The notes below the pieces were generated by a model, which worked only from the letters and a program-made list of their open reading frames with translations, was not told the origin of the DNA and did not search any database. A DNA stretch of 64,000 nt, taken from IMG/VR virus record IMGVR_UViG_3300017917_003822, positions 206,630 through 270,629 of that record; one strand, written 5' to 3'. This document shows positions 12,827 through 63,757 of this stretch, piece after piece. How positions within the stretch are numbered: the first letter of the stretch is position 1; each line of letters begins with the position of its first letter. The position numbers and the translations under genes were made by a program.

Positions 12827-13564
12827 ATGCTAAAATACCTAAAGGAATATCACGAATTTGAATATTCACAAGAAACAGATCTTAATGAGGGGTTTCTCGG
12901 TGACATCAAGGACATATGGAACAGCTTCATGAGACTAGTCGAAAAAATACTCAAGGAGAAGAAGGCTGGTCAGAAAACAAAGACACCAACAGTAAAAAAA
13001 CCTTCACCCCTGGAGGGTCAACATATGTTATATCTTCCGCATCAACAGGGACCATCCGGTGCTGTTAAATTGGTAGATGTTTATAGAGGTAAAAAGAAAC
13101 TCGATCCAAACGACAGAACAAAGCTACTTAAGAATATGCCATCATCGGATCCAGGCTATCAAAAAGTTTTAAAAGGTAACGATAGGGAGGCGGTAACTGC
13201 TTTTCTGAATTACCAAAAAAATACATGGGATAATTATCAAAAGGAAGCTCTATCAAAAATAAAACTACCAGAAAATAAGGTAGTTAAAAAAGCGATAGAT
13301 AAGCTACCAAATCCAAATTTTCCTAAAGAATTTTTAACCACTGTGGCTTATAAGGAATCGAGATTTGTTCCAAATCCACCAACAAACAAAACATATAGAG
13401 GACTATTTCAAATAGGTCCTTCTGCGTGGGCACAATTAAAAAGAATAAACCCGGAAAAATATAAAGGATCTCTCCCACCAATAGATCCTATCAAAAACAC
13501 CCAAGCGGGTCACGATTATCTTAAGTGGACCTACGAACAATTTGAAAAGGACGTAAGGGTATAA
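12827..13564 (+). CDS. circularly permuted lytic transglycosylase (SLT/GH23-like) with CTS-like leader
   Basis: AYKESRF, RGLFQI, NTQAGHDYL at C-end; YLPHQQG N-terminal. Confidence 0.8.
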   Translation: MLKYLKEYHEFEYSQETDLNEGFLGDIKDIWNSFMRLVEKILKEKKAGQKTKTPTVKKPSPLEGQHMLYLPHQQGPSGAVKLVDVYRGKKKLDPNDRTKLLKNMPSSDPGYQKVLKGNDREAVTAFLNYQKNTWDNYQKEALSKIKLPENKVVKKAIDKLPNPNFPKEFLTTVAYKESRFVPNPPTNKTYRGLFQIGPSAWAQLKRINPEKYKGSLPPIDPIKNTQAGHDYLKWTYEQFEKDVRV

Positions 13565-14143
13565 TTATTTTTTATCTTTTAGATTTGCTTTTGCTTGCTT
13601 GTATAGCGCTTTATCACCGACTTCGGTTGTTCTTCCGCCAGTCACAAAAGAATTAACTCTTGCCATGGCCCATTGCTGAGGAGTAGTTCCGGGAACATGA
13701 CCAGTTTTCCAAGCCGCATAGCCTCTAGCCCAAACTTTCTTTAATATACCAAGAGGGAATCCGGTCTTATCCGATTTCTTTTTAAGAGCCTTGTATACCG
13801 GACTATTTTTACCCATTGACGATTCTTGTAAAATTTCCTCCGTCAAATCATCATTTTCTATAAGGATATCCTCAAAAAGATTGTCTGGCAAGCCGAATGA
13901 ATCGAAATCCACTATATTCTTAGGTTCGAAGTTGTCACTTTCACCAAACATCTCCTTATACTTTTTCGTGTATTTAGATGCTTTGGTTGGAACAGGTTTA
14001 CCCTTTCCAGCTTTTCTGCTTTTATAGTCAGCATCCCATGGACCGTATGCTGATGAGTCATCATCTGCTTTGTGTCCGTGTTTTTTAATTTCTCTCTTCA
14101 TCACTTCCGGATTTCTGGTGAGATATTTCTTAGGTAATTTCAT
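13565..14143 (-). CDS. conserved T4-like phage protein of unknown function
   Basis: LKKKSDKTG...LKKVWARGYAAWKTGH.PGTTPQQWAMARVNSF block recalled from T4-like phages. Confidence 0.7.
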   Translation of the reverse strand: MKLPKKYLTRNPEVMKREIKKHGHKADDDSSAYGPWDADYKSRKAGKGKPVPTKASKYTKKYKEMFGESDNFEPKNIVDFDSFGLPDNLFEDILIENDDLTEEILQESSMGKNSPVYKALKKKSDKTGFPLGILKKVWARGYAAWKTGHVPGTTPQQWAMARVNSFVTGGRTTEVGDKALYKQAKANLKDKK

Positions 14144-14146
14144 ATT

Positions 14147-14155
14147 CTATATATC
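14147..14155 (-). promoter_or_regulatory. Class B promoter
   Basis: gatatatag on minus strand 4 nt before ATG. Confidence 0.6.
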
Positions 14156-14174
14156 GTAAAATTTTTTGAATTAA

Positions 14175-14206
14175 TTTTTTTAATTCGAGAGAATGCCCTA
14201 TATTTG
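14175..14206 (+). promoter_or_regulatory. Class A promoter
   Basis: T-tract-aattcg-N11-TATATTTG. Confidence 0.75.
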
Positions 14207-14221
14207 AGAAAAAAATACAAC

Positions 14222-15076
14222 ATGAGTCATTTCACAGTAATGGTTATCGGGGAGAATCCAGAAGATCAACTTGCCCCGTTTCAAGAAAATAACATGAGCA
14301 ATTGTCCGGAGGAGTATCTGGAATTCAACGACGAAACTGAAATTCTACAGAAAGAATGGGAGAGCCTATCTGAGGATGAAAAAAACGAATATGATGACTT
14401 CGAATCTTTCGTTGGTGATCGTGGATATGATGAACATGAAGGTAAGTTTGGTTATTGGGAGAACCCAAACGCCAAATGGGACTGGTATGTTCTGGGAGGA
14501 AGATGGACCGGTTTCTTTAAAATGAAACCAGGTCACAAAGGAGAATCTGGCAGGGGTGGATTGTTTACACCACCACCAGCGTCAGGAACTGCGGATTCAG
14601 CTCTCAAGAAGGATATAGACTTCAGAGAGATGCGAAGAAGTGCTGGTGAGGAGGCTGGTAAAACTTGGGATAAAGTCATGAAAATCGTTGGTAATTTGAA
14701 AGATTATGCAACTTGGGAATATGTTAGGGATACCATATCATCAGGTGATATTGATGCTGCCAGAGAGTATTATGCCAATCAGAAAGCAGTTGTCAAGCTA
14801 AATGAATACAACAGAAAAAACAGCTACAAGATGGCATTTATTAATCTTGATGATTTTGTGGGTTCAAGAGAGGATTACTGTATCGATGCTGCCAATTCTT
14901 CATTCGTAACTTTCGCAGTAATTAAGGACGGAGTTTGGTATGAAAAAGGATCAATGGGATGGTGGGGAATGGTTAGCAACGAGAAAAATCAGGATGATTG
15001 GAATTCGGAGGTTTCTAAAATGATCGACGAACTACCGGAGGACACACTAATCTCAGTTTACGACTGTCATATTTAA
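14222..15076 (+). CDS. conserved phage hypothetical protein
   Basis: MSHFTVMV...NPNAKWDWYVLGGRW...VYDCHI family pattern. Confidence 0.75.
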   Translation: MSHFTVMVIGENPEDQLAPFQENNMSNCPEEYLEFNDETEILQKEWESLSEDEKNEYDDFESFVGDRGYDEHEGKFGYWENPNAKWDWYVLGGRWTGFFKMKPGHKGESGRGGLFTPPPASGTADSALKKDIDFREMRRSAGEEAGKTWDKVMKIVGNLKDYATWEYVRDTISSGDIDAAREYYANQKAVVKLNEYNRKNSYKMAFINLDDFVGSREDYCIDAANSSFVTFAVIKDGVWYEKGSMGWWGMVSNEKNQDDWNSEVSKMIDELPEDTLISVYDCHI

Positions 15077-15080
15077 TCCA

Positions 15081-16396: not shown

Positions 16397-16417
16397 GAAC
16401 ACAAATAAACTATAACA

Positions 16418-17560: not shown

Positions 17561-17561
17561 T

Positions 17562-17885
17562 ATGCAGAAACATCAATTAGAATATTTCGATTGGTTCGAT
17601 ATCCAAAGAGAAATCTGTAAGGAGATGGGTATTGAAGAACAATACTTCAGAGATTATCACAAGTTAGTTGGTGGAGAATATAAGGATCTTTGGCATATTT
17701 GGCTGGAATACTTCCAGTCGGAGGTTACAAATGATACGATAGTTCGTAATGATTGCGATGAAAGAATGGAAATTAAAATTGAATGGATAACCGAAGAAGG
17801 TGACGAATGGGCAATACCCTTTGTTGAGGCGGTTTACAAGGTTTGGGATAAATTCGGAATCGAGTATGTAAGATACAGCTGGTAA
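17562..17885 (+). CDS. hypothetical protein
   Basis: ORF in operon. Confidence 0.7.
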   Translation: MQKHQLEYFDWFDIQREICKEMGIEEQYFRDYHKLVGGEYKDLWHIWLEYFQSEVTNDTIVRNDCDERMEIKIEWITEEGDEWAIPFVEAVYKVWDKFGIEYVRYSW

Positions 17886-17901: not shown

Positions 17902-18936
17902 ATGAAAATAATTATCACAGGAGGTGCGGGTTATATTGGATCCCACACTGCAGTAGAAGCACTAAGAGCAGGTCATGAAGTTATCATTATAGATTCCTTC
18001 ATCAATTCATCGAGAGATGTACTTAAAAACATAGAAAAAGCATCAGGCAAGCCTTTTGTAGCTATCGATGTATGTATGACTCAGAATACGCTAGATATTG
18101 CGGAGAAGCTTTTTGGTTTTGCACATAACACCGATGCAATTATTCACTTTGCTGCATTAAAGGATTCCCCAGGATCAACAGAAAACCCGCTGGGATATTA
18201 TAGAAACAATATAGACTCATTGCTTAGTGCGCTGGGGGTTTCTAAATTACTTAAAATCAAGAACTTCATATTCTCCAGTTCTGCGACGGTTTATGGTTAT
18301 CCCGAGTATCTACCGATCAAAGAAACACACCCAATTCTAAGAGGAACTACACCATACGGGACTTCAAAAATAATGGGAGAATGGATTCTAGAGGATGTAA
18401 CCAGAGGTAACGATATGAGGTCCGTTGCACTGAGGTATTTTAATCCGGCTGGTGCAGATCACACTGGACTTATTGGGGAAATGCCAATAGGTAGAGCAAC
18501 AAACCTTGTACCTATTATAACACAATCAGCCGCTGGAATATATGGTCCGTTAAAAATAACTGGTACTGATTATTCAACTCCAGATGGCTCTGCGATTAGA
18601 GACTACATCCACGTGACGGACTTAGCAAAGGCGCACTTAGCGGCTCTAGATTGGATGGTTGACCACGAAATGAAGTTCTTTGAGACTTTTAATCTGGGTA
18701 CGGGTAGAGGAACATCGGTAATTGAAATGGCTGAATTGTTCGACAAGGAGATTGCCCCGGGCTTATTAAAAACAGAGTTTGCTGATAGAAGACCAGGAGA
18801 TCCGGCCGAAGTTTGGTGTGATTCATCAAAGGCACAAAGAATTCTTGGATGGAGATCTGAATTAGACAACTTGGATATTTTGAGAAGTGCCTGGGAGTGG
18901 CAGAAGAACATTGCAACTGAGAATTCGGATATATAA
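17902..18936 (+). CDS. galE: UDP-glucose 4-epimerase
   Basis: GGAGYIG, SSSATVYG, YGTSK, LRYFNPAG, RDYIHV.DLA. Confidence 0.93.
   Translation: MKIIITGGAGYIGSHTAVEALRAGHEVIIIDSFINSSRDVLKNIEKASGKPFVAIDVCMTQNTLDIAEKLFGFAHNTDAIIHFAALKDSPGSTENPLGYYRNNIDSLLSALGVSKLLKIKNFIFSSSATVYGYPEYLPIKETHPILRGTTPYGTSKIMGEWILEDVTRGNDMRSVALRYFNPAGADHTGLIGEMPIGRATNLVPIITQSAAGIYGPLKITGTDYSTPDGSAIRDYIHVTDLAKAHLAALDWMVDHEMKFFETFNLGTGRGTSVIEMAELFDKEIAPGLLKTEFADRRPGDPAEVWCDSSKAQRILGWRSELDNLDILRSAWEWQKNIATENSDI
18928..18936 (+). promoter_or_regulatory. Class B promoter
   Basis: gatatataa before ATG 18940. Confidence 0.55.
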
Positions 18937-18939
18937 TGG

Positions 18940-19584
18940 ATGAAAAACATTAAACTATTCGAAGATTTTAGTAACATACCGGATTTCAATGATATTATTG
19001 ATCAGGTCGTAAAATTCCTTGAGAAGGATAAGAAGGACCTGATTTCAGTTAACAAGATGCATATAATCATAAAAAAAGCTTTTGATTCGGTCACGTTGGC
19101 CGAATTATTTAGCTTTCTGAATAATCTGGGATATAAAATGACAATATATCCCGACATTTCACCCTCCTCAATGAATTCGAGATTTACTGTAAGTAAAATA
19201 AACTACAAGGATCCCATAGGTGATCTAAAATACGGTCTTAGTTTATTAATAGATTCAAAGTTAGGAGAAAAGCAGACTAAAACCTGCATTAACATATTGG
19301 GAAACAACATTGGAATAACCAGTCTGGGTAATTTCATGCAGGATATTTTAATCAAAAAAATCAACGACAATGAAATTGATTTGCTTTTCTGGAACGGGAA
19401 ATATTTAGTTACAGGCGAATTTGAACAGACGTCCATCCACCGGGAGGATGATATGGTTGCATTAGACTTTGAAAGCTACGAGACTTCAGATAAAAGAGAC
19501 TATATTCTTTCCGCTACTGCATCAGGATCTTGGGCGGCAGGATATGATATTGAACAAATCGAATATATAGATTTTTTAAATTAA
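18940..19584 (+). CDS. hypothetical protein with CTS-like leader
   Basis: MKNIKLFEDF start. Confidence 0.7.
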   Translation: MKNIKLFEDFSNIPDFNDIIDQVVKFLEKDKKDLISVNKMHIIIKKAFDSVTLAELFSFLNNLGYKMTIYPDISPSSMNSRFTVSKINYKDPIGDLKYGLSLLIDSKLGEKQTKTCINILGNNIGITSLGNFMQDILIKKINDNEIDLLFWNGKYLVTGEFEQTSIHREDDMVALDFESYETSDKRDYILSATASGSWAAGYDIEQIEYIDFLN

Positions 19585-20078: not shown

Positions 20079-20522
20079 ATGATGACTAGATCAAAAACAA
20101 AAAAGCAACCGGAAAAAAGAAGTGACGAGATTACCGATCTGGAGGTTGCTAGAAAAATGTTAAAAATATACCAGAGCGCACAGGACAGAAAGCTTGACTT
20201 TGATCTTGGCTTTGAGTCGGTTAAAAAATTATTGTCATACCCAACTTGTTACTATACTGGAAGAAGATTTGAAGAGGAAGGTTCGTTTTCCAGAAGTTTC
20301 GATAGAGTTGATTCATCCAAGGGATACGTCGAGGGAAATGTTGTTGCATGCACTGTTGACATTAACGGGAAAAAGAGCAATTTATCGGTGGAGGAAATAG
20401 AATGTCTGTACATTAAATTGGTTAAGCCTCAATCGTTTAAAATGGAGGAGTCCAAAAAAATAGAAATGGAGGTAAATTTCCAGGAAATAAATAATCTGGA
20501 GGGGAACCAGGAGGATATATAA
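20079..20522 (+). CDS. His-Me-finger/HNH-like phage protein (possibly degenerate)
   Basis: TCYYTG...SFDRVDSSKGYVEGNVVAC...N..K. Confidence 0.6.
   Translation: MMTRSKTKKQPEKRSDEITDLEVARKMLKIYQSAQDRKLDFDLGFESVKKLLSYPTCYYTGRRFEEEGSFSRSFDRVDSSKGYVEGNVVACTVDINGKKSNLSVEEIECLYIKLVKPQSFKMEESKKIEMEVNFQEINNLEGNQEDI
20514..20522 (+). promoter_or_regulatory. Class B promoter
   Basis: gatatataa before ATG. Confidence 0.55.
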
Positions 20523-20525
20523 TGA

Positions 20526-21329
20526 ATGGAGATAAAAAATTTTAATACCTGGATAACTGAATCTGAAGACCCGGATAATGGTATAGTAAACAAGGACCAC
20601 ATAGATAAATTAATCAACGATGTGGATTTTTTAAAAAGAGTACCCAAGGGAGATCTACGTTTTGAGGTTCTTAAAAACGGTCAGCAACCACCATTAAAGT
20701 TTTATCTAATTAGGATAATGACGCATGGAAGCCTCTATAGACAAATAAACAGGCTGCTGGATGAAACCGGATTTGATGTTGTACCCGATATGGTTGGTAA
20801 TTATATTACAATTACAATTTTAATTGATGATAGCCTTCCCGGAGGCGATTTTAAAATCAAACAGCTATATGACTGGAGTGAAAGACATAATATGACTGTT
20901 TTATCAAACCCGAAGAACTATGATCAATTAAAAAACGTTGTAGAGAAATCAATTGAACATATTTTCGAGAAAATAAAACAGGTTAGATTGATTGTCCCAT
21001 CAAACATAAGAAAGATTGAAGGATTCTCGGATAAGATTAAGGAGAGCGTAAAGTCCCTTTACGATGGTATAATTGATAATTTTATTGAGAATGGAAGTAT
21101 ACCAAACGAACTAATTGATGATGATATTCTGACTGAAATTTTCACTAAAACTCTTCATGAAAATCCACAGTACATTGAGAAAATAAACAATCTACCTCCA
21201 TCTGCTAAGAAGAGGATTTTTAAAAGCTCGTTGGATCTTTTCAAGGACGATAATATTGAAATAAATCAAAAAACTCTGAACGGCATAGTGGCGTTCTTCA
21301 AAGTTAAAAAAACATGGGGGATGATATGA
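20526..21329 (+). CDS. hypothetical protein with CTS-like leader
   Basis: MEIKNFNTWITE-S start. Confidence 0.7.
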   Translation: MEIKNFNTWITESEDPDNGIVNKDHIDKLINDVDFLKRVPKGDLRFEVLKNGQQPPLKFYLIRIMTHGSLYRQINRLLDETGFDVVPDMVGNYITITILIDDSLPGGDFKIKQLYDWSERHNMTVLSNPKNYDQLKNVVEKSIEHIFEKIKQVRLIVPSNIRKIEGFSDKIKESVKSLYDGIIDNFIENGSIPNELIDDDILTEIFTKTLHENPQYIEKINNLPPSAKKRIFKSSLDLFKDDNIEINQKTLNGIVAFFKVKKTWGMI

Positions 21330-21724
21330 CAAAAAATCTAAAAACCTTTGAAAGCTGGAATAGTAAGGACGACGAAATAGAGAATCTTCAGGAGTTGCTT
21401 AATTATAACATGGATTATATTAGAGAACTCTTCGATGAGAGAACCATGGAATCGGATTTCTTGGAAATTTCGGAACCGGAAGAATTTGTGGTTGAATATT
21501 GGCCTAAATCTTTGGATGGAGCCATTCCAAAGAGAATCTCATATTATATAGACGAGATCGCGGAGAAAATATCGGAGCGAATGAAAAATAAAATCGATTG
21601 GAGATTCTCACCTAACGGCAACGTGCAGAGAATAATTTTCGAACTCGATAGTCCTGTAAATACGGAACATTTGGAACTCGTCAGAAAATTTAATAAAACA
21701 AAAGAAAAACTAAGATACACATAA
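21314..21724 (+). CDS. hypothetical protein with CTS-like leader
   Basis: MTKNLKTFESW (start probably 21326). Confidence 0.7.
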   Translation: MGDDMTKNLKTFESWNSKDDEIENLQELLNYNMDYIRELFDERTMESDFLEISEPEEFVVEYWPKSLDGAIPKRISYYIDEIAEKISERMKNKIDWRFSPNGNVQRIIFELDSPVNTEHLELVRKFNKTKEKLRYT

Positions 21725-37654: not shown

Positions 37655-37924
37655 TTATGAGTAGGGTTTATCCATCGTTGGGTAACCTGTTCTGTCCATA
37701 CATTTTTTAAGATACCCCATGGCCTCATTAATATATCCCTCATATGTGTGTGCCTCCTCCATATCATCGTGATAATCTTTAGCTTCCTTTGTCAGATACT
37801 CCTCACAAAGTTTTTCCATCTGCATTTTAGCAGATTCACTCATACAAGAACTTCCCTCCTGCATTCCGTAATTTTCCTGAATTTCGGAAATCCCGTAATT
37901 TTCATAAGATTGTAAATTTTTCAT
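37655..37924 (-). CDS. hypothetical protein with CTS-like leader
   Basis: MKNLQSYENY start. Confidence 0.7.
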   Translation of the reverse strand: MKNLQSYENYGISEIQENYGMQEGSSCMSESAKMQMEKLCEEYLTKEAKDYHDDMEEAHTYEGYINEAMGYLKKCMDRTGYPTMDKPYS

Positions 37925-37942
37925 AGTATTTTATTTAATTTT

Positions 37943-38191
37943 TTATTGTTCGTCTCCAGTTTTTTTGGAATTTTTAGCTGAAAATATTTTTTCGATTACA
38001 GTTAAACCTAAACCACCACCTGCTATTAAAACAAGGGCATCAAACATAAACTCCGGAGTAACGAAATCCTTAGAATTTATTGTTGCAACCCAGGTTAAGA
38101 TTATCACATTAAATAATGCAAAAAGTGCGGCGAACCTCTTGCTAGAAGTATCACTTTGCCCCGAAAGTAGGTCGTTAAAAAACTTTTTCAT
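37943..38191 (-). CDS. two-TM holin-like membrane protein
   Basis: SSKRF followed by two TM helices; function inferred. Confidence 0.55.
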   Translation of the reverse strand: MKKFFNDLLSGQSDTSSKRFAALFALFNVIILTWVATINSKDFVTPEFMFDALVLIAGGGLGLTVIEKIFSAKNSKKTGDEQ

Positions 38192-38212
38192 GTCTATTTT
38201 GGTTATTTTAAT

Positions 38213-38243
38213 CTATATATCTGAAAATGACTTAAATATATAG
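38213..38243. promoter_or_regulatory. back-to-back class B promoters
   Basis: gatatatag (minus, 38213-38221) and aatatatag (plus, 38235-38243). Confidence 0.6.
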
Positions 38244-38246
38244 TAC

Positions 38247-38684
38247 ATGAAGAATCTACTTGAATATAATCACTGGAACAATAACAGCATAAAATGGAAC
38301 CAAGGAGGCTGGTTGTTGATTAAAGGTAAACCTAATAAAGAGGGTAAATCTCACATTTTCGCAGCACAGGTTAGAAACGTGAGCCAGCTTGCTAGATATA
38401 AGACTAGTGGCAAGGAAGGTATACCCGTTAATATGGCGAATCTATATCCAGATTTTTATGGGATTGTTACCGATAGTTCGGGTGAAATAAAGGCTATGAA
38501 ACTTATTTCAGATACAGCTTATATAGATAAGTGGATTGGTTTAAAAAATCTTAGTGTTGGTCTAAATAAAAACAAGACTCTAAATTGGAGAGAAACCATT
38601 GCAGAAACATCACTGAGCAAGGTACTAAAATCAAATGAAGGTTTACTAAAAAATTCAGATGAATTTATAATACCTCAGAAATAA
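38247..38684 (+). CDS. hypothetical protein with CTS-like leader
   Basis: MKNLLEYNHW start. Confidence 0.7.
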   Translation: MKNLLEYNHWNNNSIKWNQGGWLLIKGKPNKEGKSHIFAAQVRNVSQLARYKTSGKEGIPVNMANLYPDFYGIVTDSSGEIKAMKLISDTAYIDKWIGLKNLSVGLNKNKTLNWRETIAETSLSKVLKSNEGLLKNSDEFIIPQK

Positions 38685-41242: not shown

Positions 41243-41564
41243 AAAAACGGTGTCTTTTAAAAATAGACACGGAAAGGAGATCCTAATTTCAAGAACTGGA
41301 CTAAATGAATTTAGAATGAGAGGGATTGACACCTTCTTTATGAGAACTTCAACAACCGATGATGGAAAACTTATTATGTTTGATCCTTCAGGTGGTCCTT
41401 ATATGACAGCAGAGCACAATGATAGTCCAGGAATAGATATGGGATTTTTTGATATCGAGTGGGAAGGACTTAGAGTTGAATCTATGACCTGGGGTGAAAT
41501 TAGTGGAGAAGTTATTCTAAAGTGCTATTCAGAAAAACCAGTAGATTGGGTTGAAGTTAAATAA
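41223..41564 (+). CDS. hypothetical protein
   Basis: DPSGGPY motif. Confidence 0.65.
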   Translation: MEDIDIKKTVSFKNRHGKEILISRTGLNEFRMRGIDTFFMRTSTTDDGKLIMFDPSGGPYMTAEHNDSPGIDMGFFDIEWEGLRVESMTWGEISGEVILKCYSEKPVDWVEVK

Positions 41565-42141
41565 AAGCTCTCTTCTTAATCTCCAGATACTTATTTATAT
41601 TCTTTTCGAACTCTTCCTTGGTCTGGTTTATTTTTCCGAGGAAGATTTCTCTTTCCCTTTCTGTTAATCTATTGTAAACCTTGATAAAGGAACCCGGATC
41701 TGATTTATAGACGTCAACAATCACATTTCCAAAGTTGGCATCTTGTCCCGTTGTTGCGTAGTCTATCGCTCTGCCCTTTCTGCTTTTATATCTCTTTCTT
41801 GCCCATTCCAGAACGTAGAAAAATCTAAGATTCCAATCATCAAGAGTTCTTATCTCGGTAAATCTCTTAAGAATATGAACATGGAATGAATTTTGATATC
41901 CCGGGGTCGATTTTCTTATCGGCCCATTTCCATAAATTGTGATGCAATTACCGGGCCTATCCATATCAAGTTCATCATTATAAAGTCTCATATTTCCATT
42001 ATCCCAGATCCTGTCGGTTGTGGAATCATAAAACCCAACAGATTCTAAAACTGAAAAAATAGGCAGGGCCTTTACCTCATCCAGGGTATAGTTATAACCA
42101 TTAGATTCGAAAAGAGCAAAGGACTTTAAATTGATCATCAT
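41557..42141 (-). CDS. hypothetical protein with CTS-like leader
   Basis: MMINLKSFALFE-S start. Confidence 0.7.
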   Translation of the reverse strand: MMINLKSFALFESNGYNYTLDEVKALPIFSVLESVGFYDSTTDRIWDNGNMRLYNDELDMDRPGNCITIYGNGPIRKSTPGYQNSFHVHILKRFTEIRTLDDWNLRFFYVLEWARKRYKSRKGRAIDYATTGQDANFGNVIVDVYKSDPGSFIKVYNRLTEREREIFLGKINQTKEEFEKNINKYLEIKKRAFI

Positions 42142-42163
42142 ACGTGTGGTTTAAATTTATCCC

Positions 42164-42202
42164 ATATATATTTTTTTTATTCCGATGCTTTTTTATACAT
42201 TT
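42164..42202. promoter_or_regulatory. divergent overlapping class B (minus) and class A (plus) promoters
   Basis: aatatatat on minus 42164-42172; T-tract-attccg-N10-TACATTTG on plus. Confidence 0.65.
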
Positions 42203-42214
42203 GTAAAAAAAATA

Positions 42215-47913: not shown

Positions 47914-47916
47914 TCT

Positions 47917-49864: not shown

Positions 49865-50285
49865 TGGAAAAAGAATTTGTGCCTTATGAACAAGCACTAA
49901 CTTTAAAAGAACTTGGTTTTGATGAACCTTGTTTAGGTTACTACTTAACTAATTTGTTAACAAACGAAGTAAAACTATTTATTGATAATAGAACAGGACT
50001 TTCATCATTTGAAAAAACTACACCTGCTCCAACATTCTCTCAAGTATTTAGATGGTTTAGAGAGAAGTATAACTTGAGAGGATTTATTGGATTTAGACCA
50101 AATGTAAAAAAATTTGATTGTCATGTTTATGATATGTCTCTGTCTGGCAAAGAATATGTTGAACAAAGAACTATGGAAGAGTTTAACAAAGACCCTAAAG
50201 TTGGAACCTACGAAGAAGCAGAACTTGAATGTTTAAAGAAACTAATTGAAATTGTTAAAGATAAGAAATAATGGAAAAAGAATTT
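49795..50285 (+). repeat. 84-bp perfect direct repeats (49795-49878 and 50202-50285)
   Basis: Identical by manual comparison; each spans a stop/start junction. Confidence 0.9.
49864..50271 (+). CDS. paralog family Y, copy 2
   Basis: Same three blocks. Confidence 0.8.
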   Translation: MEKEFVPYEQALTLKELGFDEPCLGYYLTNLLTNEVKLFIDNRTGLSSFEKTTPAPTFSQVFRWFREKYNLRGFIGFRPNVKKFDCHVYDMSLSGKEYVEQRTMEEFNKDPKVGTYEEAELECLKKLIEIVKDKK

Positions 50286-50777
50286 ATTCCTTACGAACAA
50301 GCATTAGTTTTAAAAGAATTAGGATTTGATGAACCTTGTTTTAAATATGTTTATATTGGAGATACTGGAAATAACTTTGATCATTATCTTGAAGTAGAAC
50401 CATCAAAGGCAAAAAATTATAATGAGGATGATTTATGTATATCACAGCCAACTTACTCAGCAGCATTTAGATGGTTTAGAGAGAAGTATAATATTCATCA
50501 TTCAATGAGACCCGTGGTTGGATCTAAAAATGGATACGACTCATATCCAATTTTGGGGTGGGAATCAGATATTTTTGCTACAAATCAAGGAACTCAAAAT
50601 TCATATTACATGGGATATCCGGTCTGTGAGTGGTTCACAGCAACACTAGATAATTTTGACGAGGGTGACACATTGAAGGATTTGAATTTAGATCCACTTA
50701 AATATGAAGAGGCAGAGCTTAAATGTTTAAAAAATATTATAAAATACGTCAAAAAAGAAAAGCTGAATGGAAGATAA
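50271..50777 (+). CDS. paralog family Y, copy 3
   Basis: Same blocks, diverged 3' end. Confidence 0.8.
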   Translation: MEKEFIPYEQALVLKELGFDEPCFKYVYIGDTGNNFDHYLEVEPSKAKNYNEDDLCISQPTYSAAFRWFREKYNIHHSMRPVVGSKNGYDSYPILGWESDIFATNQGTQNSYYMGYPVCEWFTATLDNFDEGDTLKDLNLDPLKYEEAELKCLKNIIKYVKKEKLNGR

Positions 50778-52486: not shown

Positions 52487-52564
52487 AGTCAGGTGGCGGA
52501 ATTGGTAGCGCATTTCTCTATACCAACGAGAATCGGAGTGCAGGTTCGAATCCTGTCCTGACTA
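52487..52564 (+). ncRNA. tRNA-like element 4 (9-nt anticodon loop)
   Basis: agtcagg/cctgact; gcggaattggtagcgc; ttctc-tataccaac-gagaa; gcagg-TTCGAAT-cctgt. Confidence 0.75.
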
Positions 52565-52579
52565 CTAAAAATTGGAAGT

Positions 52580-55681: not shown

Positions 55682-55715
55682 AAAAAAAGGAATCTGTGAT
55701 AGATTCCTTTTTTTT
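55682..55715. terminator. bidirectional terminator
   Basis: aaaaaaaggaatct-gtgat-agattcctttttttt. Confidence 0.8.
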
Positions 55716-55718: not shown

Positions 55719-56387
55719 TTATACTGAGTATTTCTTAGCGAGATTTGCAAGACCCTGAAATAATCCCTTCCAGTTTGGATCGAGTTTAATCAACTGATCC
55801 ATCGTAAAGTATGATGCGTTCTCCATCTGAAAATCCTCACCATTTCTTTTATAGACAGCAACAAATCCATTATATGCTCCTGGAGCAACTTTGAGATCCT
55901 GCTTTTTAACTTTATCAAAGGGAGAATGCCATTCAAAATTTAAAGCTTTCTGATCATACCCAACTGCAACATCAATAAAAACTGTTGGATAATATCGGTC
56001 ATCATATTTAGACTCCTGGGTTCTCGTAGCATACATCCAAACTCCAGCACCTTTTCTAGGTCCTGATGCTGACCAAGAAGCATCAGCCCATTTTTCAATC
56101 TTGAAAGTTGCAGGTTTTATTTGTCCCCATTCCGGTATTTTGAAATCCTTTCCACCATAAGCAGCAACTAAATTTTTGGTGTCCTGATAATATGCCTTGG
56201 ATTTATTCTTATCGGTGTAATACGGATCCTCATTAACTTTAGCCTGATCACCGCTTGCAAGCATATTCTCAACCTGAGATTTATAATCCGCAATGTCTGA
56301 AGTTTTTCCTTTTAATTCAGGAGCCTCCATTGCTTCCATTGATGCTGACTCGTTTAAAAAGTCATCAAATCTTAATAATTTATTCAT
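55719..56387 (-). CDS. hypothetical protein with CTS-like leader
   Basis: MNKLLRFDDFLNE-S. Confidence 0.75.
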   Translation of the reverse strand: MNKLLRFDDFLNESASMEAMEAPELKGKTSDIADYKSQVENMLASGDQAKVNEDPYYTDKNKSKAYYQDTKNLVAAYGGKDFKIPEWGQIKPATFKIEKWADASWSASGPRKGAGVWMYATRTQESKYDDRYYPTVFIDVAVGYDQKALNFEWHSPFDKVKKQDLKVAPGAYNGFVAVYKRNGEDFQMENASYFTMDQLIKLDPNWKGLFQGLANLAKKYSV

Positions 56388-56391
56388 TTTA

Positions 56392-56748
56392 TTATTTATT
56401 TTGTCTAATTAATAATTCCCCTAAGACCTCGATTTTACCAACAATCTCCTGGAAATCAACCTGTGATATGTTCATATCATTTTTTGTTGATGAGTAAAGA
56501 ACATCAAGAAGATCTTTATACTCCTTCTCTGCCTCTGCTCTGTCAAATTTCCCCTCCTTTGCTTTCTTATAAGTCGATAGTTTAACCTTAAAGTGGTGAT
56601 ATGTTAACATCGCATCGCCGCCTTTTTCTTTAGCTGAGTCAGCTATTTTGGTAGCTCCTGCCAATCTAGTAGCAGAAAATTCTTCGAACGTCTCCTTAGT
56701 TTTGGATTCGTTTAAAAATTGGTTGTATTTTTTAATTTGTTCGCTCAT
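56392..56748 (-). CDS. hypothetical protein with CTS-like leader
   Basis: MSEQIKKYNQFLNE-S; class B motif at 56753-56761. Confidence 0.75.
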   Translation of the reverse strand: MSEQIKKYNQFLNESKTKETFEEFSATRLAGATKIADSAKEKGGDAMLTYHHFKVKLSTYKKAKEGKFDRAEAEKEYKDLLDVLYSSTKNDMNISQVDFQEIVGKIEVLGELLIRQNK

Positions 56749-56781
56749 ACATCTATATATCAATAAAAAAAACCAGTTTTA

Positions 56782-57279: not shown

Positions 57280-57324
57280 AAAAAGCCTGATGAGTCATCA
57301 GGCTTTTTTTATGTAGATATATAA
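57280..57324 (+). terminator. terminator followed by class B promoter
   Basis: aagcctgatg-agt-catcaggctt plus T-tract; gatatataa at 57316-57324. Confidence 0.75.
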
Positions 57325-57327
57325 AGC

Positions 57328-57789
57328 ATGTTTAAATTTATTAGAACCTTCGACGATTACGACACGCCAATTTTACCATCCGGATTAAGTATAACTAAAG
57401 ACGGAATAGAAAATTTGGCAAATAGTTTTTTGGAAGAGATAGAGAAGAATTATAATATAGGGAGAAATAAGCCATTCGACAAAAAGATTGGGAACTGTGC
57501 TTGGTTCACCGAATCATTTTACGAGTGGAGCGAGATTAATAATGTACCAGCTAGAATCATATATTTTCCAGAAACTCAAAAGGCCAAGGATGCACACATA
57601 GCAATTCTGATTGGCGGATATGTTCTGGACTTCACACATAAACAATTTAGTAAGGATCCCAAAGATAATTTCTCAATCAACAAAGTTGACCACTATAAAA
57701 AATTCGGATATGATGTTGATGATGCGGAGGTGGTCGACGAATTTCCTTCCTGGATTGATGACATTCACCCGCCAAAAGAAAAAAAATAA
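57328..57789 (+). CDS. papain/transglutaminase-fold protein with CTS-like leader
   Basis: GNCAWF ... HIAI ... LDFT..QF (Cys-His-Asp). Confidence 0.6.
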   Translation: MFKFIRTFDDYDTPILPSGLSITKDGIENLANSFLEEIEKNYNIGRNKPFDKKIGNCAWFTESFYEWSEINNVPARIIYFPETQKAKDAHIAILIGGYVLDFTHKQFSKDPKDNFSINKVDHYKKFGYDVDDAEVVDEFPSWIDDIHPPKEKK

Positions 57790-57794
57790 GACAC

Positions 57795-58610
57795 ATGAAA
57801 CACATTCAACTATTCGAATGGTTTTTGAAAACAAGAGAACCGGAGGAAATTCTTAGATGGGACAAACCAATCAACAACCCATTGAAGCAGGGAAGATTTA
57901 AAGACGTTATTGTCAATTCAAAGAGAGTTTCTCCGAGAACAACCAAGGGGGTAAGAACCCTAGCAAGAGAAATGTATGAATTTCCAAACGATAAAGAATT
58001 ACTTAGAGATGTTAAATACATGACTAATTTATCAGACCGAGAAATTTCCACTCTGGTTGACTATGGACTTTCTCATATGCCCGCTAAAATAGACCTTATG
58101 GATTATGATACAATCCTTATACCCCAAACTGGATCTAAGATAGTTTATAAAATTCTAGATTCACTTTATAACGTTGAGACTGAATTTGGATCAAATAAGA
58201 AAACTCAGTGGAACCCTAAAGTTTATGATAACGCCTTCATAAAAAGAAAATGGAAAGACGTTGAGTGGAACATGGATTTAATTAACAAGACCGGTGAGAA
58301 AACTAAAAACGATGTTCTTAATATGATCGAGAGGCTAAAAACACAAAAAGGCAACGAGGATGCTAAATTAGGGGGAAATGTGATACCAATCTATAGAAAA
58401 TTTCTTGATAAGTTCATGGATATTAATCCAGAAATAGCTAAGGATCTGGCTGGAAAAAGGGTAATTATTCTGGACGATTTTGTAACAGATGGTGCGACTA
58501 GAAAACAGATGAGAAATTTAACGATTCCATATGGACCAAAGTCAATTCTAAATTTAGCTTTATTCCACATAAGAGGTCAAAAGAGAGAATCAGACCCTGA
58601 CTACGAATAA
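57795..58610 (+). CDS. type I phosphoribosyltransferase with CTS-like leader
   Basis: GKRVIILDDFVTDGAT PRPP loop; MKHIQLFEWF start. Confidence 0.75.
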   Translation: MKHIQLFEWFLKTREPEEILRWDKPINNPLKQGRFKDVIVNSKRVSPRTTKGVRTLAREMYEFPNDKELLRDVKYMTNLSDREISTLVDYGLSHMPAKIDLMDYDTILIPQTGSKIVYKILDSLYNVETEFGSNKKTQWNPKVYDNAFIKRKWKDVEWNMDLINKTGEKTKNDVLNMIERLKTQKGNEDAKLGGNVIPIYRKFLDKFMDINPEIAKDLAGKRVIILDDFVTDGATRKQMRNLTIPYGPKSILNLALFHIRGQKRESDPDYE

Positions 58611-58930: not shown

Positions 58931-59749
58931 TTAGGCTAGATTTTTAGCCCAAGATGCTATATTTAAGGAGGCAAGAGTTCTAGGTCCTAGAGTTTTCTTA
59001 AACTCCTTGATATTATCTTTTAGTGTTTGTATTCCAGCACTTGCATTATCATCTGCACTAAATATATTACCGCCAGGGACGTATTTGTTAAATCCAGGTT
59101 GACTTAGAGCATACAGACCTTTATATTTATTATTACCTGCCTTAGGATTAAATCCTGATTCTATCTTAGCTACAGTTGTTGCAAAATCAAAGGGAACACC
59201 GAACTTGGAGCTGTATTTCTGTATGGTTTGTTTAACTGCGGAGTTTTGTGGTTTATTGATATCGATTTTAGCCTGTTCTCCCTGTTTTTTCCATTTTTCT
59301 TTCCACATATTTAAGAAGAGAGCAGCAGCTGTTTTTTGATCTCCAGCATCAAGAGCTTTGATGATTGATGTCTTAACTTGAGGTTTATCGCTAGGAATAT
59401 TCTTTACTAGATTTGCGTATTTAACACCTCCCTTAGTTTTAATTGTGTCAGGTGCAAGTTTACCTGTACCCAAAGAAGCCTCTATTAAACCCTTAGCACC
59501 AGCTATTCCCTGTTGGTGCTGCATATAAAGTGTGAAATCATCGTTACCTGGGATTGGATTGAAGTCGGCAGGTAAAAAGGCTCCTTGTGAAGTATCGGAT
59601 ACCCCGGTGTCATCCGCCTTTTGTTTCTTAAGCTCTTCCGCTTTTTTCTGTGCTTCTATTTCCATATTACCCAGCATCGGAGCTATAGCTGACAAGAAAC
59701 TTCCAGTTCCTTCATTGATAAATTCTTCAAAAGATGATATTTTCTTCAT
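58931..59749 (-). CDS. second circularly permuted lytic transglycosylase with CTS-like leader
   Basis: YMQHQQG N-terminal; AKIESGF, KGLY, NASAGI C-terminal; class B motif at 59769-59777. Confidence 0.78.
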   Translation of the reverse strand: MKKISSFEEFINEGTGSFLSAIAPMLGNMEIEAQKKAEELKKQKADDTGVSDTSQGAFLPADFNPIPGNDDFTLYMQHQQGIAGAKGLIEASLGTGKLAPDTIKTKGGVKYANLVKNIPSDKPQVKTSIIKALDAGDQKTAAALFLNMWKEKWKKQGEQAKIDINKPQNSAVKQTIQKYSSKFGVPFDFATTVAKIESGFNPKAGNNKYKGLYALSQPGFNKYVPGGNIFSADDNASAGIQTLKDNIKEFKKTLGPRTLASLNIASWAKNLA

Positions 59750-59778
59750 ATGATGTTTATTGATTGTACTATATATCC

Positions 59779-60474: not shown

Positions 60475-60828
60475 TTAACGTCTTAGAAATGCAAGATCTC
60501 TACCGCCTCTTTCACCTCCGTGCATCTTAGCCATTACAAGACCAAATAAAAACGCGTTAAACGCTTCGTAATGATCCGTAGCGTAAATTACATTGTTATC
60601 TATTGCTACACCTGATTGTCCGTCTGTGGTGTGTCTAATTGATAAATTTGGATATAATCTCTTAACATCCGATTCCAATTTAGCTCTCATTGCTTCTTGT
60701 TCTCTGTTTGCAACCGTATGATCCGCTGGAGAAGCAACATCGGTAGTTCCAGTAGATGTAGTCTGTGGTAGATTAGACATCTCAGGGGATTCGTTTACGA
60801 AGTTCTCGTATACTTTTAAATTTTCCAT
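60475..60828 (-). CDS. hypothetical protein with CTS-like leader
   Basis: MENLKVYENFVNE-S. Confidence 0.7.
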   Translation of the reverse strand: MENLKVYENFVNESPEMSNLPQTTSTGTTDVASPADHTVANREQEAMRAKLESDVKRLYPNLSIRHTTDGQSGVAIDNNVIYATDHYEAFNAFLFGLVMAKMHGGERGGRDLAFLRR

Positions 60829-60847
60829 CTCAAAAATCTGATATTTT

Positions 60848-61153
60848 TTATAAGTTCCAAGCAGGATTTGCAATTATGAGGATATCTCCCTCTATTCTAG
60901 GTAACTCCTTTGTTGAGTGATAATCATCATACTTTATCTGGTCAGGATAAAATTTCTTCCCATTAAAAACTATATAGTTATCCTCGGATCTTTCACCCTC
61001 ACCTCTAAGACTAAAATCATTTGTTTTTAGGACATCATGAGTTGCAGATTTAATGGTGGGTTTACCGAAGATGCTGTCCCAGAAGCTCTCGTTTACATCA
61101 GCATTTTCTGTAACTACTCCTCTGAAATCTTCGTATTTTTTAATGTTTTCCAT
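60848..61153 (-). CDS. hypothetical protein with CTS-like leader
   Basis: MENIKKYEDF; class B motif at 61168-61176. Confidence 0.7.
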   Translation of the reverse strand: MENIKKYEDFRGVVTENADVNESFWDSIFGKPTIKSATHDVLKTNDFSLRGEGERSEDNYIVFNGKKFYPDQIKYDDYHSTKELPRIEGDILIIANPAWNL

Positions 61154-61200
61154 GTGATATTTTTTCTTTATATATCACATAACAAATAGAGAAAGATTGA

Positions 61201-62190
61201 TTAGATGAGATCCTTGAGATTGTTATATCTTCTAAGGTTGGAGTATTTTTTAATCTCATCCTCCGAGAGATATGGGTTATCCTGAAACATATGAATCTGG
61301 TCCTCAATCGGTATTTTCTTCCAGACCTTAGAAAGGCCCATCCCGTAATCACCCTTCTCCTTTTTCATCGAGTTAAAGACCACTTTCAAGGTCTTCTCAC
61401 TTACTACGTTTCCTTTAAAGTTGAGTTGTCTTAGTGTTAAATTGATAGGTGCACCTTTTACAGATATTAACTGATTGAACGAAACATCTAGCCAATCAGT
61501 GATTTCCGGACATCCAATTAAATCCGTGAGTTGATTATAGGAGCATTTGAGAGATTCCATTTTTTTAACTCTTAGCCCAGAAAGTGATGTGATTGCATTT
61601 TTATTGCAGCTCATTGATTCAACCTTTATTGGTGCTCCTTCTAGACTTTTGAGTTCATTATATGAGCAATCGTAGTTATCAAGGACTTTAACCGGTCCAC
61701 CCTTAAGGGACTTAAGCTTATTATGTGACCCATCAAATCTTCTACATTTTTTTGGAAAATTCGGCCAGAATTTTGAAACCTTGCAAGATCTGATTGATAT
61801 CGAGGAAATGAATGAAAATTTGATACCCCTAGCTATCTTGGCATCTTTCTCTCTTTGTTTTTTCTCCTTAGCGCTTTCTTTATTCCATGTCCTGGAAGAT
61901 AAACCCCAGTCATCGGAGTACATGTGATCGATTACCACACCTCCATTTTCAGAATCAATATACCAGTTATTACTGGAACCATCAAGCAATCTGATCCCGT
62001 CCTCGGTTAGGCTATCACTTTTTCTGTATTTGTCGAATAAAAAATCCGATGCTGCAATGATCTGTGCATGTTGTTCAGGATGGTCCTTACTCATGCCAGA
62101 TATGAGATTCTCCAGTGCGGTTTTTTGTGAAGAGGTCCACTTAAATCTTCTCTCAATCATATCTACAATTCTAATAATGAATATCATCAT
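61201..62190 (-). CDS. leucine-rich-repeat protein (phage SLEGAP type)
   Basis: Repeats such as CSYNELKSLEGAP and CSYNQLTDLIGCP. Confidence 0.8.
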   Translation of the reverse strand: MMIFIIRIVDMIERRFKWTSSQKTALENLISGMSKDHPEQHAQIIAASDFLFDKYRKSDSLTEDGIRLLDGSSNNWYIDSENGGVVIDHMYSDDWGLSSRTWNKESAKEKKQREKDAKIARGIKFSFISSISIRSCKVSKFWPNFPKKCRRFDGSHNKLKSLKGGPVKVLDNYDCSYNELKSLEGAPIKVESMSCNKNAITSLSGLRVKKMESLKCSYNQLTDLIGCPEITDWLDVSFNQLISVKGAPINLTLRQLNFKGNVVSEKTLKVVFNSMKKEKGDYGMGLSKVWKKIPIEDQIHMFQDNPYLSEDEIKKYSNLRRYNNLKDLI

Positions 62191-62234
62191 TATAGATAAT
62201 TGGGATGCGTGGGTTTCGGTAAAAAAATAGTGAT

Positions 62235-62741
62235 TTATTCTAGTGCGTGATTCTCCCAGTGGCCTTCAGGATAACTTGGATTCACGTAACAGATGTAATC
62301 TGTCCAGCCATTTCCTTTATCATCTTTCCAGTGGTTATAGACTGCATCCTCGTCCATGAATGGCACGTAACCAGACTTCTTAAGCAACTCAACGAACCAT
62401 TTTAGTAGATCCCGTTTGAATTCCTCAGGTTTCTCTCCTTCCAACGAGATCTGACATGCGATCCAAGGTGTTCTCATGGCTTTACCTGGTGAGTCCGGAT
62501 CGCCATAAGCAAGTAACTCTGGATAAAACACCATTGTGGTTTTATTAACCCAGTCCCTGTTCTTAGCATCAGGATTGATCTCAAATGGAGTCTTAACTTC
62601 CAAAACACCCTCATCAACAACCTCACATTCTGGATTTTGTAACATTTTATCGACCAATTCCTTGATCTCAGCATCAAGTTCAGCCGATACGTTGATCAAC
62701 GACTCGTTGATGAAGCTATTGAAATTTAATATTCTGATCAT
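62235..62741 (-). CDS. hypothetical protein with CTS-like leader
   Basis: MIRILNFNSFINE-S. Confidence 0.7.
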   Translation of the reverse strand: MIRILNFNSFINESLINVSAELDAEIKELVDKMLQNPECEVVDEGVLEVKTPFEINPDAKNRDWVNKTTMVFYPELLAYGDPDSPGKAMRTPWIACQISLEGEKPEEFKRDLLKWFVELLKKSGYVPFMDEDAVYNHWKDDKGNGWTDYICYVNPSYPEGHWENHALE

Positions 62742-62742
62742 C

Positions 62743-63030
62743 TTATTTCTTTTTATCAGTTTTAAACTTTTTGATGAATCTTTCTCTTCTACCCTTGTCC
62801 TCGCCTAAACCTGTGCCTGATATCATGTCCCTAACATCATATTTTTCTTTATGATCCTTATTAGCTTTCACGTATGCTGCTAGTTTTTCGGCATCTATGT
62901 CGTTGTCGTCGATGAAATTCTGAATTGAATTCTGTCCGGATCCAGTGATCTGATGAATATAAACAGCCTCCATTGAAACTTTCTCATTCAGAAAGTTCTC
63001 GTATAGTTCAATGTGTTTCATGTTTTTCAA
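62743..63030 (-). CDS. hypothetical protein with CTS-like leader
   Basis: MKHIELYENFLNE-K. Confidence 0.7.
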   Translation of the reverse strand: MKNMKHIELYENFLNEKVSMEAVYIHQITGSGQNSIQNFIDDNDIDAEKLAAYVKANKDHKEKYDVRDMISGTGLGEDKGRRERFIKKFKTDKKK

Positions 63031-63044
63031 TTTTATATTTATGT

Positions 63045-63290
63045 TTATTCTATTACTCCATCGGTTCCATCCAGACTATCATGAACTGAATTAAGGCCAT
63101 TCACTGCTGAGGTTAATTTGGAATACATCCATGGGGACAGCTGTTGTCCTTTATTTACTCTATCCAGAATCATGTTGGCGTAATCTGAGATTCGTTCCAA
63201 ATCTCCTTTTGCCATCCTATTTAACCCATCGACAACCTCCTGTGGGGTTCTTTCAGCTGAAAATTCCTCTAGTAGTTTAATATTTTTCAT
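63045..63290 (-). CDS. hypothetical protein with CTS-like leader
   Basis: MKNIKLLEEFSAE; MAK..L.....A...L...W..SK.T.A pattern. Confidence 0.7.
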   Translation of the reverse strand: MKNIKLLEEFSAERTPQEVVDGLNRMAKGDLERISDYANMILDRVNKGQQLSPWMYSKLTSAVNGLNSVHDSLDGTDGVIE

Positions 63291-63292
63291 GA

Positions 63293-63757
63293 TTATGATT
63301 TGTGATTTAATGTTTCAAAAACAACCTTCTGTTCCTGTAGATAAACGTCAGTGTCAACATAAACCATACCCAGATGATTCTCTTTGTCACGATCACTGAT
63401 GTCGGTGATGGAAAGCAAGGTTACATTCACTTTCTCACCTTTTCTACCCTGCATCATTAGCTGGTAGTCATTCAACCAATACTGGCTGTTGTGAATTCTA
63501 TATGTTGGACGATCTGGTGAATTTCCATTCGGTCTCACATCGAAATACTGATAGTGAACAAACATCGTACTTCCATAGAATGAAAAAACTCTTCTCTCTG
63601 CTTCATCTACAGTTGCTGCAGTTTTGGGCATGAGAGATGCAAAGAAAGCAGGATCTATCTCATTCTCAACATCAAGCTCCTTCGGATCAAATCTGTCGAT
63701 TGTCATCTCATTTAGAACGCTACCTGAGAAGTCCTCGTATAGTGCAATGTGTTTCAT
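63293..63757 (-). CDS. hypothetical protein with CTS-like leader
   Basis: MKHIALYEDFSGSVLNE; class B motif at 63766-63774. Confidence 0.7.
   Translation of the reverse strand: MKHIALYEDFSGSVLNEMTIDRFDPKELDVENEIDPAFFASLMPKTAATVDEAERRVFSFYGSTMFVHYQYFDVRPNGNSPDRPTYRIHNSQYWLNDYQLMMQGRKGEKVNVTLLSITDISDRDKENHLGMVYVDTDVYLQEQKVVFETLNHKS

Follow-up and report, generated by a model that had tools for sequence, protein, structure and literature searches.

Results

A leader shared by 18 late genes

The stretch analysed here (the window) comprises 64,000 nucleotides with a G+C content of 36% and makes up the final part of IMGVR_UViG_3300017917_003822, a record 270,629 bp long (the source contig). Eighteen otherwise unrelated late proteins encoded in the window share an N-terminal leader of roughly 14 residues. 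An initial annotation had listed their N-termini as fitting the pattern MKx(I/L)xx(F/Y)(E/D/N)x(F/Y/W). All 18 coordinates give open reading frames (ORFs) of 81-272 aa and the motif is present in each, with the correction of three start codons: the start at 21314 is better placed at ATG 21326 (MTKNLKTFESW), that at 42141 is possibly 42138, and 63030 is a TTG, the ATG at 63021 giving MKHIELYENFLNEK.

The strict core of the pattern, [ILV]xx[FY][EDN]x[FYW], was found within the first 22 residues of 16 of the 125 called genes, where the rate in protein bodies predicts 0.65; two of the 16, at 15626 and 17562, lie outside the listed 18. A start-anchored regular expression gave 15 matches at called starts, compared with a mean of 0.62 and a maximum of 3 in 200 shuffles of the first 15 residues. 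All 18 leaders have F/Y(/L) at position -3 and F/Y/W at position 0, that is, an aromatic or hydrophobic pair three residues apart. The further claim that (L/I/V)NE often follows was borne out, as this motif occurs within 21 residues in 9 of 20 genes matching the regular expression (a set that includes two probable chance matches) and in 0 of the 105 others. The broader form (L/I/V)-x-E was seen by eye within 25 residues in 13 of the 18 leaders.

The synonymous codons for Phe, Tyr and Glu at the conserved leader positions match genome usage, and the substitutions observed (I/L/V, F/Y/W) are conservative for a protein and not for an RNA; together these point to selection on the peptide. A six-frame rescan of the whole window gave no additional convincing leaders. 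The match at 6604 (RNA ligase) is probably due to chance. The gene at 17562-17885 (107 aa) lies in an early-type run without the late motif upstream and starts MQKHQLEYFDWF, which fits the core and not MK-x-I; it is a doubtful case, either a chance match or the sole exception to the rule that leaders lie in late units.

Promoter context

The late-type motif RATATATA is present in 17 copies in the window. The leader genes had all been assigned to RATATATA units, and each of the 18 indeed has a copy either 4-23 nt upstream or upstream in the same-strand run. Within the window, ATATATA lies no more than 45 nt upstream of 10 of 20 leader genes and of 7 of 105 others (p = 1e-5); the enrichment of ATATATA before leader genes gave p = 1e-5 and 1e-12. 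Window promoter sites upstream of an ATG are located at 12815-12826, 18928-18939, 20514-20525, 38235-38246, 57316-57327 and 56749-56761 (minus strand). The gap between RATATATA and the ATG is modally 4-5 nt, in 6 of 10 directly preceded cases in the window and in 30 of 52 in LR745206.1, the nearest complete public genome, a huge phage of 634,780 bp; many late mRNAs would therefore be almost leaderless. Upstream of window genes there is A-rich sequence, not a Shine-Dalgarno site.

A hairpin and T-run lie just upstream of the motif in at least three units (12827, 57328 and 59749), and a T-run at 56748. Such units are compact terminator-promoter-ORF cassettes. A simple terminator scan missed the hairpins plainly visible upstream of 57328 and 59749. 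Six genes in the window have a RATATATA promoter and no leader; the promoter thus does not in itself require one. In LR745206, ATATATA precedes the portal, protease, capsid and gp15-like genes, and in the source contig it precedes two peptidoglycan-hydrolase genes. The shared promoter motif thus supports a predicted expression of the leader genes together with head genes.

Protein bodies

The bodies had been described as unrelated, and this applies to 16 of them by BLASTP; the proteins at 12827 and 59749 are related to each other, both containing the SLT domain that had been named among the bodies and that Pfam finds in these two. The PRTase assignment was also upheld, the protein at 57795 having a weak Pfam match and a predicted structure that confirms a type I PRTase fold. 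Searches of PHROGs and Pfam gave nothing for the other 15 of the 18 bodies, and a fold search with the 222-aa protein (55719-56387) gave no match. As judged by these searches, 15 of the 18 bodies are without recognisable function, alongside two with SLT and one with the PRTase fold. SLT domains are known in internal virion proteins of other phages (phrog_342).

A membrane-type hydrophobic segment was looked for in the 18 leader proteins and none was found; all are predicted to be soluble. AlphaFold models of two families show a confidently predicted body from which the leader, a short helix with pLDDT <50, stands apart.

Leaders in the source contig and related phages

Relatives of the ClpP encoded in the window, at 75-88% identity, lie on contigs of 250-435 kb, four of which are of ~271 kb, and the source contig may for this reason be a complete genome. 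A megablast comparison with GenBank phages, covering 24 kb of the window, returned no match. Five window genes are strongly conserved in LR745206 at 51-72% identity, encoding flotillin (72%), a PTH2-like protein (68%), ClpP (64%), an AAA protein (58%) and the protein at 42185-42973 (51%); LR745206 has the leader and the promoter motif as well. The study from which LR745206 comes placed its genomes of >634 kb in the 'Mahaphage' clade, with Bacteroidetes as predicted hosts (PMC7162821). By its capsid protein, the closest cultured phage is Tenacibaculum phage PTm1 (29% identity).

The 45 kb of the source contig upstream of the window contain five more leader-type genes. In LR745206, 70 leaders are present at called starts, compared with 5.5 in shuffles (maximum 12), and the inclusion of alternative starts raises the count to 77, which make up 74 BLAST families and are encoded at sites dispersed over the genome. 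The commonest leader there is MKYLKxYK(L/I)FE↓S (the arrow marks the predicted cleavage point), and the window form ..Y-N-Q-F-I-N-E-S is also present. When LR745206 was scanned with a matrix derived from the window leaders, 37 of the 48 best matches lay within residues 1-30 of their proteins. Nine leaders, for example MKHILQFNDFLNE↓G, are present in a 50-kb accessory stretch of LR756504 (capsid protein 53% identical). No leaders were found in the capsid regions of Lak-B1 and LR756504, an absence of little weight given that leaders are scarce in structural regions everywhere. The literature searched contained no earlier description of this kind of leader in huge phages.

Among orthologues the leader is conserved and the segment that follows it is variable. 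The leader of the SLT protein at 59749 is kept in 3 sequences at 52-100% identity, with orthologues in the related loci L002 and L003, that of the 222-aa protein is kept across 9 sequences, and that of the PRTase-fold protein was compared in 8 sequences (49-99%), with M1, K2, L6, F7, E8, F10, L11 and K12 invariant. A 464-aa protein is common to the source phage and LR745206 (E = 1e-99), and in 8 of 8 orthologues its leader ends in (L/I/M)-x-E, followed by an invariant A-S-L-x-G-N. None of the 18 window leader genes has a homologue in LR745206, and the leader genes are hypervariable. A nucleotidyltransferase-like protein at 31453-32196 of the window (247 aa) has no leader, and its LR745206 homologue at 516201-517373 (390 aa) has a leader-type N-terminus; the tag appears from this comparison to be portable between proteins.

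A cluster of large leader proteins is kept between the source contig (L232:8286-12870) and LR745206 (249113-253988), with pairs of 464/504 aa (E = 1e-99) and 525/641 aa; a 681-aa homologue of these proteins lies ~8 kb from the capsid gene in some contigs. In contrast to the variable leader proteins, those of this cluster look like a tagged core set. The window also encodes an LRR protein without a leader (61201-62190); LRR-type neighbours at L002:2104, L002:4626 and L003:20394 apparently have one, the relationship being judged by eye.

Head module, capsid site and scaffold in relatives

LR745206 and 80 related contigs have a T4-type head module with a gp21-like protease. Pfam identifies the portal (Portal_T4, 2.7e-57) and capsid protein (Gp23, 1.8e-26) of LR745206, and its protease is fused to a scaffold in a protein of 707 aa (L231:12546-14669, equivalent to LR745206 198546-200669). 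In an hhalign comparison with T4 gp21 (E 3e-5), GEFDHP and VSSRAAG of the protease domain align with GELNHP and VSSRGLG. The capsid propeptide ends EYAE(F/Y)H(S/Q)INE↓NAY in ~55 distinct full-length sequences listed from the 80 related contigs, and the site is IHE↓N in LR756504 and LNE↓D in Lak-B1. The INE↓N site of the relatives is the counterpart of FLTE↓AEIGG in T4 gp23. By its residues, L-N-E↓S of the leaders is the same kind of site as the predicted maturation site of the capsid protein.

The scaffold half of the fusion consists of 9-12 tandem 14-residue repeats with Y-S-E-Y-(I/L/V)-A-E-(N/H), seen in 62 of 62 distinct proteins examined. The unit, N-I-A-Y-S-E-Y-I/L-A-E-N-L-D-K, provides a cleavage-type site per repeat and has the same form as Y-Q-E-F-I-A-E↓A of T4; beyond the repeats lies an acidic tail. 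The LR745206 proteome contains 93 occurrences of the pattern aromatic-x-x-aromatic-(L/I/V/M)-x-E where 42 are expected, and 30 of the 93 are N-terminal, 11 are in the scaffold and 3 are in an 83-aa mini-repeat protein. The latter is encoded at 460435-460686 (minus strand), far from the head module, and has three scaffold-type units 14 residues apart (YEDYIAE, YSEYISE and YCDYLCE).

Leader-like N-termini are also encoded, in many contigs, by two conserved genes that lie downstream of the capsid gene. Directly after the capsid gene, an NFACT-R domain protein starts MRNLKKFNNFLKE↓G, and ~2 kb further on an acidic protein starts MKLKKYNNYLKE↓D, its likeness to T4 gp67 being the acidic stretch only. 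The NFACT-R (RNA-binding, RqcH-type) protein is of ~130 aa (L231:16508-16897, and at ~11800 in many major capsid protein loci, e.g. L053 and L076); this domain is unexpected for a head-module gene.

Besides the five further leader genes noted above, a walk along the source contig from 211 kb to 162 kb turned up only genes of early type, two peptidoglycan-hydrolase genes and one Gp23-like paralogue. The paralogue, of 298 aa (L359:6620-7516, source contig ~178.3-179.2 kb), shares 27% identity with the C-terminal portion of the capsid protein of LR745206. It stands among early-type genes and adjoins genes for thymidylate synthase and an M42 peptidase.

Discussion

A candidate head-targeting propeptide

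The genes ipII and ipIII of T4 start MKTYQEFIAE↓A and ipI starts MKTFKEF...ITE↓A. In the T4 capsid-targeting sequence (CTS), residues 4 and 7 serve targeting and residues 8 and 10 serve processing (PMC9026906). The internal proteins of T-even phages have nothing in common but the leader, and T4 Ip1-3 each inhibit a different GmrSD restriction enzyme (PMC3012670; PMC12373910). The leader described here is probably a head-targeting propeptide like the T4 CTS, marking cargo loaded into the head, and the comparisons make it most likely that these uncultured huge phages have a much enlarged version of the T4 capsid-targeting system. The initial annotation had proposed a portable T4-CTS-like tag on injected, candidate anti-defence proteins. 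This reading is supported in part: the tag fits every comparative test run, and an injected anti-defence effector role for the leader proteins would be by analogy only.

Under a capsid-targeting mechanism, the RATATATA promoters would drive late transcription of the leader genes, in many cases giving almost leaderless mRNAs. Each protein would dock onto the scaffolding core of the growing prohead by its first 10-14 residues, which have hydrophobics at ~4, 7 and 10, and a gp21-type prohead protease would cut after Glu in (L/I/V)-x-E, a cut site of the same kind as the end of the capsid propeptide and as that in every scaffold repeat. The mature body, too large to exit the shell, would stay with the DNA and would leave with it at the next infection. 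We infer this docking, cleavage, virion presence and ejection of the leader proteins. The likeness to the repeats suggests that a leader may dock by imitating one scaffold unit and be removed by the cuts that dismantle the scaffold.

The T4 CTS (of IPI, IPII, IPIII and Alt, cleaved by gp21) is likewise a short N-terminal propeptide on unrelated proteins, with two aromatics three apart and then (L/I)-x-E, where the window form is F-E-D-F-L-N-E↓S. The relatives have a T4-type portal, a gp23-type capsid protein, a gp21-like protease and a matching end of the capsid propeptide. In contrast with the T4 CTS, the window leader has ~3 extra N-terminal residues (its first aromatic comes after MKx-I-x-x), the residue preferred before Glu is Asn, many cargoes are acidic, and the protease of the relatives is fused to a repeat scaffold. 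The scale also differs, with 18 genes in 64 kb and ~77 in the 635-kb relative, whereas T4 has three Ips and Alt, and the huge-phage system is known here from sequence alone. Cargo-loading peptides of encapsulins are also short portable peptides that load unrelated cargo into an HK97-fold shell; they are usually C-terminal and are not removed by a protease, and the shell neither holds DNA nor delivers to another cell. The parallel between these peptides and the leader is a functional analogy only.

Like the leader genes, the internal-protein loci of T-even phages contain hypervariable genes recognised by a shared leader, with non-homologous bodies (PMC3012670; PMC12373910). Those loci have few genes, at two loci, with at least 10 kinds across the group, whereas dozens per genome are found here in many cassettes. 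In phiKZ-like giants (201phi2-1, SPN3US), a gp21-related protease likewise cleaves many head proteins after Glu, and the phages eject a large mass of protein (PMC5694885; PMC9026906); in contrast, their propeptides are mostly >100 residues without a common leader, the site is (S/A/G)-x-E, and ~8-19 proteins are processed (PMC5694885). A phiKZ-type long propeptide was ruled out, the leader being common to all, of 10-25 residues and with L/I/V at P3. The mobile promoter/stem-loop (PeSL) cassettes of T4-type phages are likewise compact regulatory cassettes flanking hypervariable accessory genes (PMC2839356); they are early promoters with conservation at the nucleotide level. The window cassettes differ in having a late-type RATATATA after the terminator and conservation of the ORF at the protein level.

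Several observations weigh against head targeting or limit its reach. A canonical (L/I/V)-x-E is lacking close to five of the 18 leaders, many leader bodies are acidic, unlike the basic internal proteins of T4, and the numbers are large, with ~15% of window genes and ~9% of LR745206 genes bearing the leader. The Pfam S77 match of the protease is weak (E 0.005, below the cut-off), and T4 gp21 was not among the PDB sequences recovered by a profile search with this domain. A scaffold-repeat profile was enriched at N-termini 2-2.7 fold in LR745206 (p ~5e-4) and showed no enrichment in the window, and mimicry of the scaffold is therefore just suggestive. The main capsid, protease and scaffold genes of the source contig were not found by the contig walk, by related-locus scans with three capsid queries, by the INENAY DNA pattern (among the matches listed) or by a scan that used the conserved 464-aa leader protein as query. 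The evidence linking the leaders to a T4-type protease therefore comes from the relatives. Homologues in LR745206 were found for just 14 of the 125 window proteins; the window is thus, on this count, mostly accessory DNA, and the kinship rests on a few well-conserved genes together with the shared leader and promoter. A close cultured relative was looked for and none was found, and PTm1 showed no leader in the part scanned, its first 50 kb.

Treating the leaders as sequence copies of the scaffold repeat was dropped, as a matrix of the full 14-residue repeat finds no leaders; what leader and repeat have in common is the short form alone.

Alternative explanations

It seems improbable that the leader is a tag for a destination or partner outside the head, either a degron for ClpP or a chaperone, or an amphipathic anchor for a flotillin (SPFH) microdomain. 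The window does encode ClpP (11061-11729, Pfam 4e-55) and flotillin (35797-37239), 64% and 72% identical to their LR745206 counterparts, and the leader is modelled as a short amphipathic helix. However, both genes lie in runs without the late motif, and a ClpP or membrane tag leaves unexplained the resemblance of the leader to the capsid maturation site and scaffold repeats. The leader is also carried by conserved head-module genes, it is often followed by a Glu-specific cleavage-type motif that a degron or anchor would not need, and no known N-terminal signal of its form was recognised.

We regard as very unlikely an RNA signal or nascent-peptide effect, in which the conserved start would serve the translation or stability of almost leaderless late mRNAs. 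The promoter motif ends modally 4-5 nt before the ATG, so many mRNAs would start at or next to the start codon, as such an effect would have it. However, second-to-fourth genes in units, with long upstream RNA, are equally leadered (57795, 56387, 60828, 63290, 63021 and 62741), and the genes at 14143 and 20051 (both minus strand) have a 4-nt spacing yet no leader; the genomic usage of F, Y and E codons and the protein-conservative F/Y/W and I/L/V swaps also speak for the peptide over the RNA.

There is very little prospect that the leader is a passenger of mobile terminator-promoter cassettes, its 5' end a PeSL-like recombination site and its peptide without function. This would suit the hypervariability of the leader genes (0 of 18 with an LR745206 homologue) and the hairpin, T-run, RATATATA and ORF assemblies at 12827, 57328 and 59749 (at least three, with the T-run at 56748), and mobile regulatory cassettes have been described in T4-type phages (PMC2839356); however, nucleotide identity is low beyond the 8-nt promoter because synonymous codons vary, and the leader is kept in orthologues down to 44-50% identity and on conserved, syntenic head-module genes. 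A Sec, Tat or lipoprotein signal peptide was ruled out by the absence of the hydrophobic h-region sought in the 18 proteins, where the highest 19-residue Kyte-Doolittle mean was ≤1.26, with the maximum outside the leader in all but 62741 (0.69), and the leaders are rich in E, D and N.

Head targeting leads to a wider proposal, which we offer tentatively: huge phages near LR745206 and LR756504 (the Mahaphage group, with predicted Bacteroidetes hosts) might use a scaffold-repeat unit as a universal loading peptide. If this is true, about a tenth of the proteome, ~80 unrelated proteins per genome, would be packed in the head and delivered together with the DNA; no injected proteome yet proposed for a phage would come near it in size, and it would be readable from sequence. 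Most genes of huge phages have no known function, and a virion-cargo tag would sort a tenth of them into one class, that of proteins acting at the first moments of infection, where the three tagged proteins of T4 block restriction enzymes. It would also show a T4-type head adapted to a very large, fast-changing cargo set, and would make available a loading peptide, short and of natural origin, for a capsid far larger than that of T4.

Arrangement of the leader units

The first unit, 12815..13564 (plus strand), has GATATATA at 12815-12822 and, after 4 nt, a leader gene for a 245-aa protein with a C-terminal SLT transglycosylase domain, the leader being MLKYLKEYHEF, then DLNE↓G. The same GATATATA and 4-nt spacing precede the leader gene of 18928..19584 (plus strand; 214 aa, MKNIKLFEDF), which has no canonical (L/I/V)xE close by, and the two leader genes that form one unit at 20514..21724 (plus strand), namely 20526-21329 (MEIKNFNTWITE↓S, 267 aa) and 21326-21724 (MTKNLKTFESW, 132 aa).

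The unit 37655..38221 (minus strand) begins with GATATATA at 38221-38214 and a small hydrophobic protein without a leader (37943-38191), and its last gene is the leader gene 37655-37924 (MKNLQSYENYGISE↓I, 89 aa). On the plus strand, 38235..38684 has AATATATA, 4 nt and a leader gene of 145 aa (MKNLLEYNHW) with no cleavage-like motif. The minus-strand unit 41557..42172 has AATATATA at 42172-42165 and a leader gene of 193-194 aa (M(M)INLKSFALFE↓S).

Two leader genes, 56392-56748 (MSEQIKKYNQFLNE↓S, 118 aa) and 55719-56387 (MNKLLRFDDFLNE↓S, 222 aa), follow a T-run and GATATATA (56761-56754) in the minus-strand unit 55719..56761, beyond which lies a bidirectional terminator (55682-55714). A hairpin and T-run, GATATATA and 4 nt open the plus-strand unit 57316..58610, also with two leader genes, 57328-57789 (MFKFIRTFDDY, 153 aa) and 57795-58610 (MKHIQLFEWFLK, 271 aa, type I PRTase fold). 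The minus-strand unit 58931..59777 has a hairpin and T-run, GATATATA (59777-59770) and one leader gene, for the SLT-domain protein at 59749 (MKKISSFEEFINE↓G, 272 aa).

The last two units are also on the minus strand. In 60475..61176, GATATATA (61176-61169) is followed by the leader genes 60848-61153 (MENIKKYEDF...VNE↓S, 101 aa) and 60475-60828 (MENLKVYENFVNE↓S, 117 aa). In 62235..63774, AATATATA (63774-63767) is followed by four successive leader genes, 63293-63757 (MKHIALYEDF..VLNE↓M), 63045-63290 (MKNIKLLEEF), 62743-63021 (MKHIELYENFLNE↓K) and 62235-62741 (MIRILNFNSFINE↓S), and the gene for the LRR protein without a leader (61201-62190, minus strand) continues the run.

Other observations

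At ~173.5-174.9 kb of the source contig (L359:1827-3208), two adjacent genes without leaders match Pfam SduA_C (weakly) and Tad6, names tied to defence and anti-defence. Within the window, two sets of three tandem paralogues each lie on the plus strand outside the late units, at 46520-48591 and 49496-50777; the proteins of one set start MKN(I/L)H(V/I)LPT... or a variant, and those of the other start MEKEF(I/V)PYEQAL..LKELGFDEPC. ARAGORN identified one tRNA-Tyr, at 52487-52565, with the unusual anticodon ATA. The motif (G)TCCTGAC recurs just upstream of 51475, 52580 and 53445.

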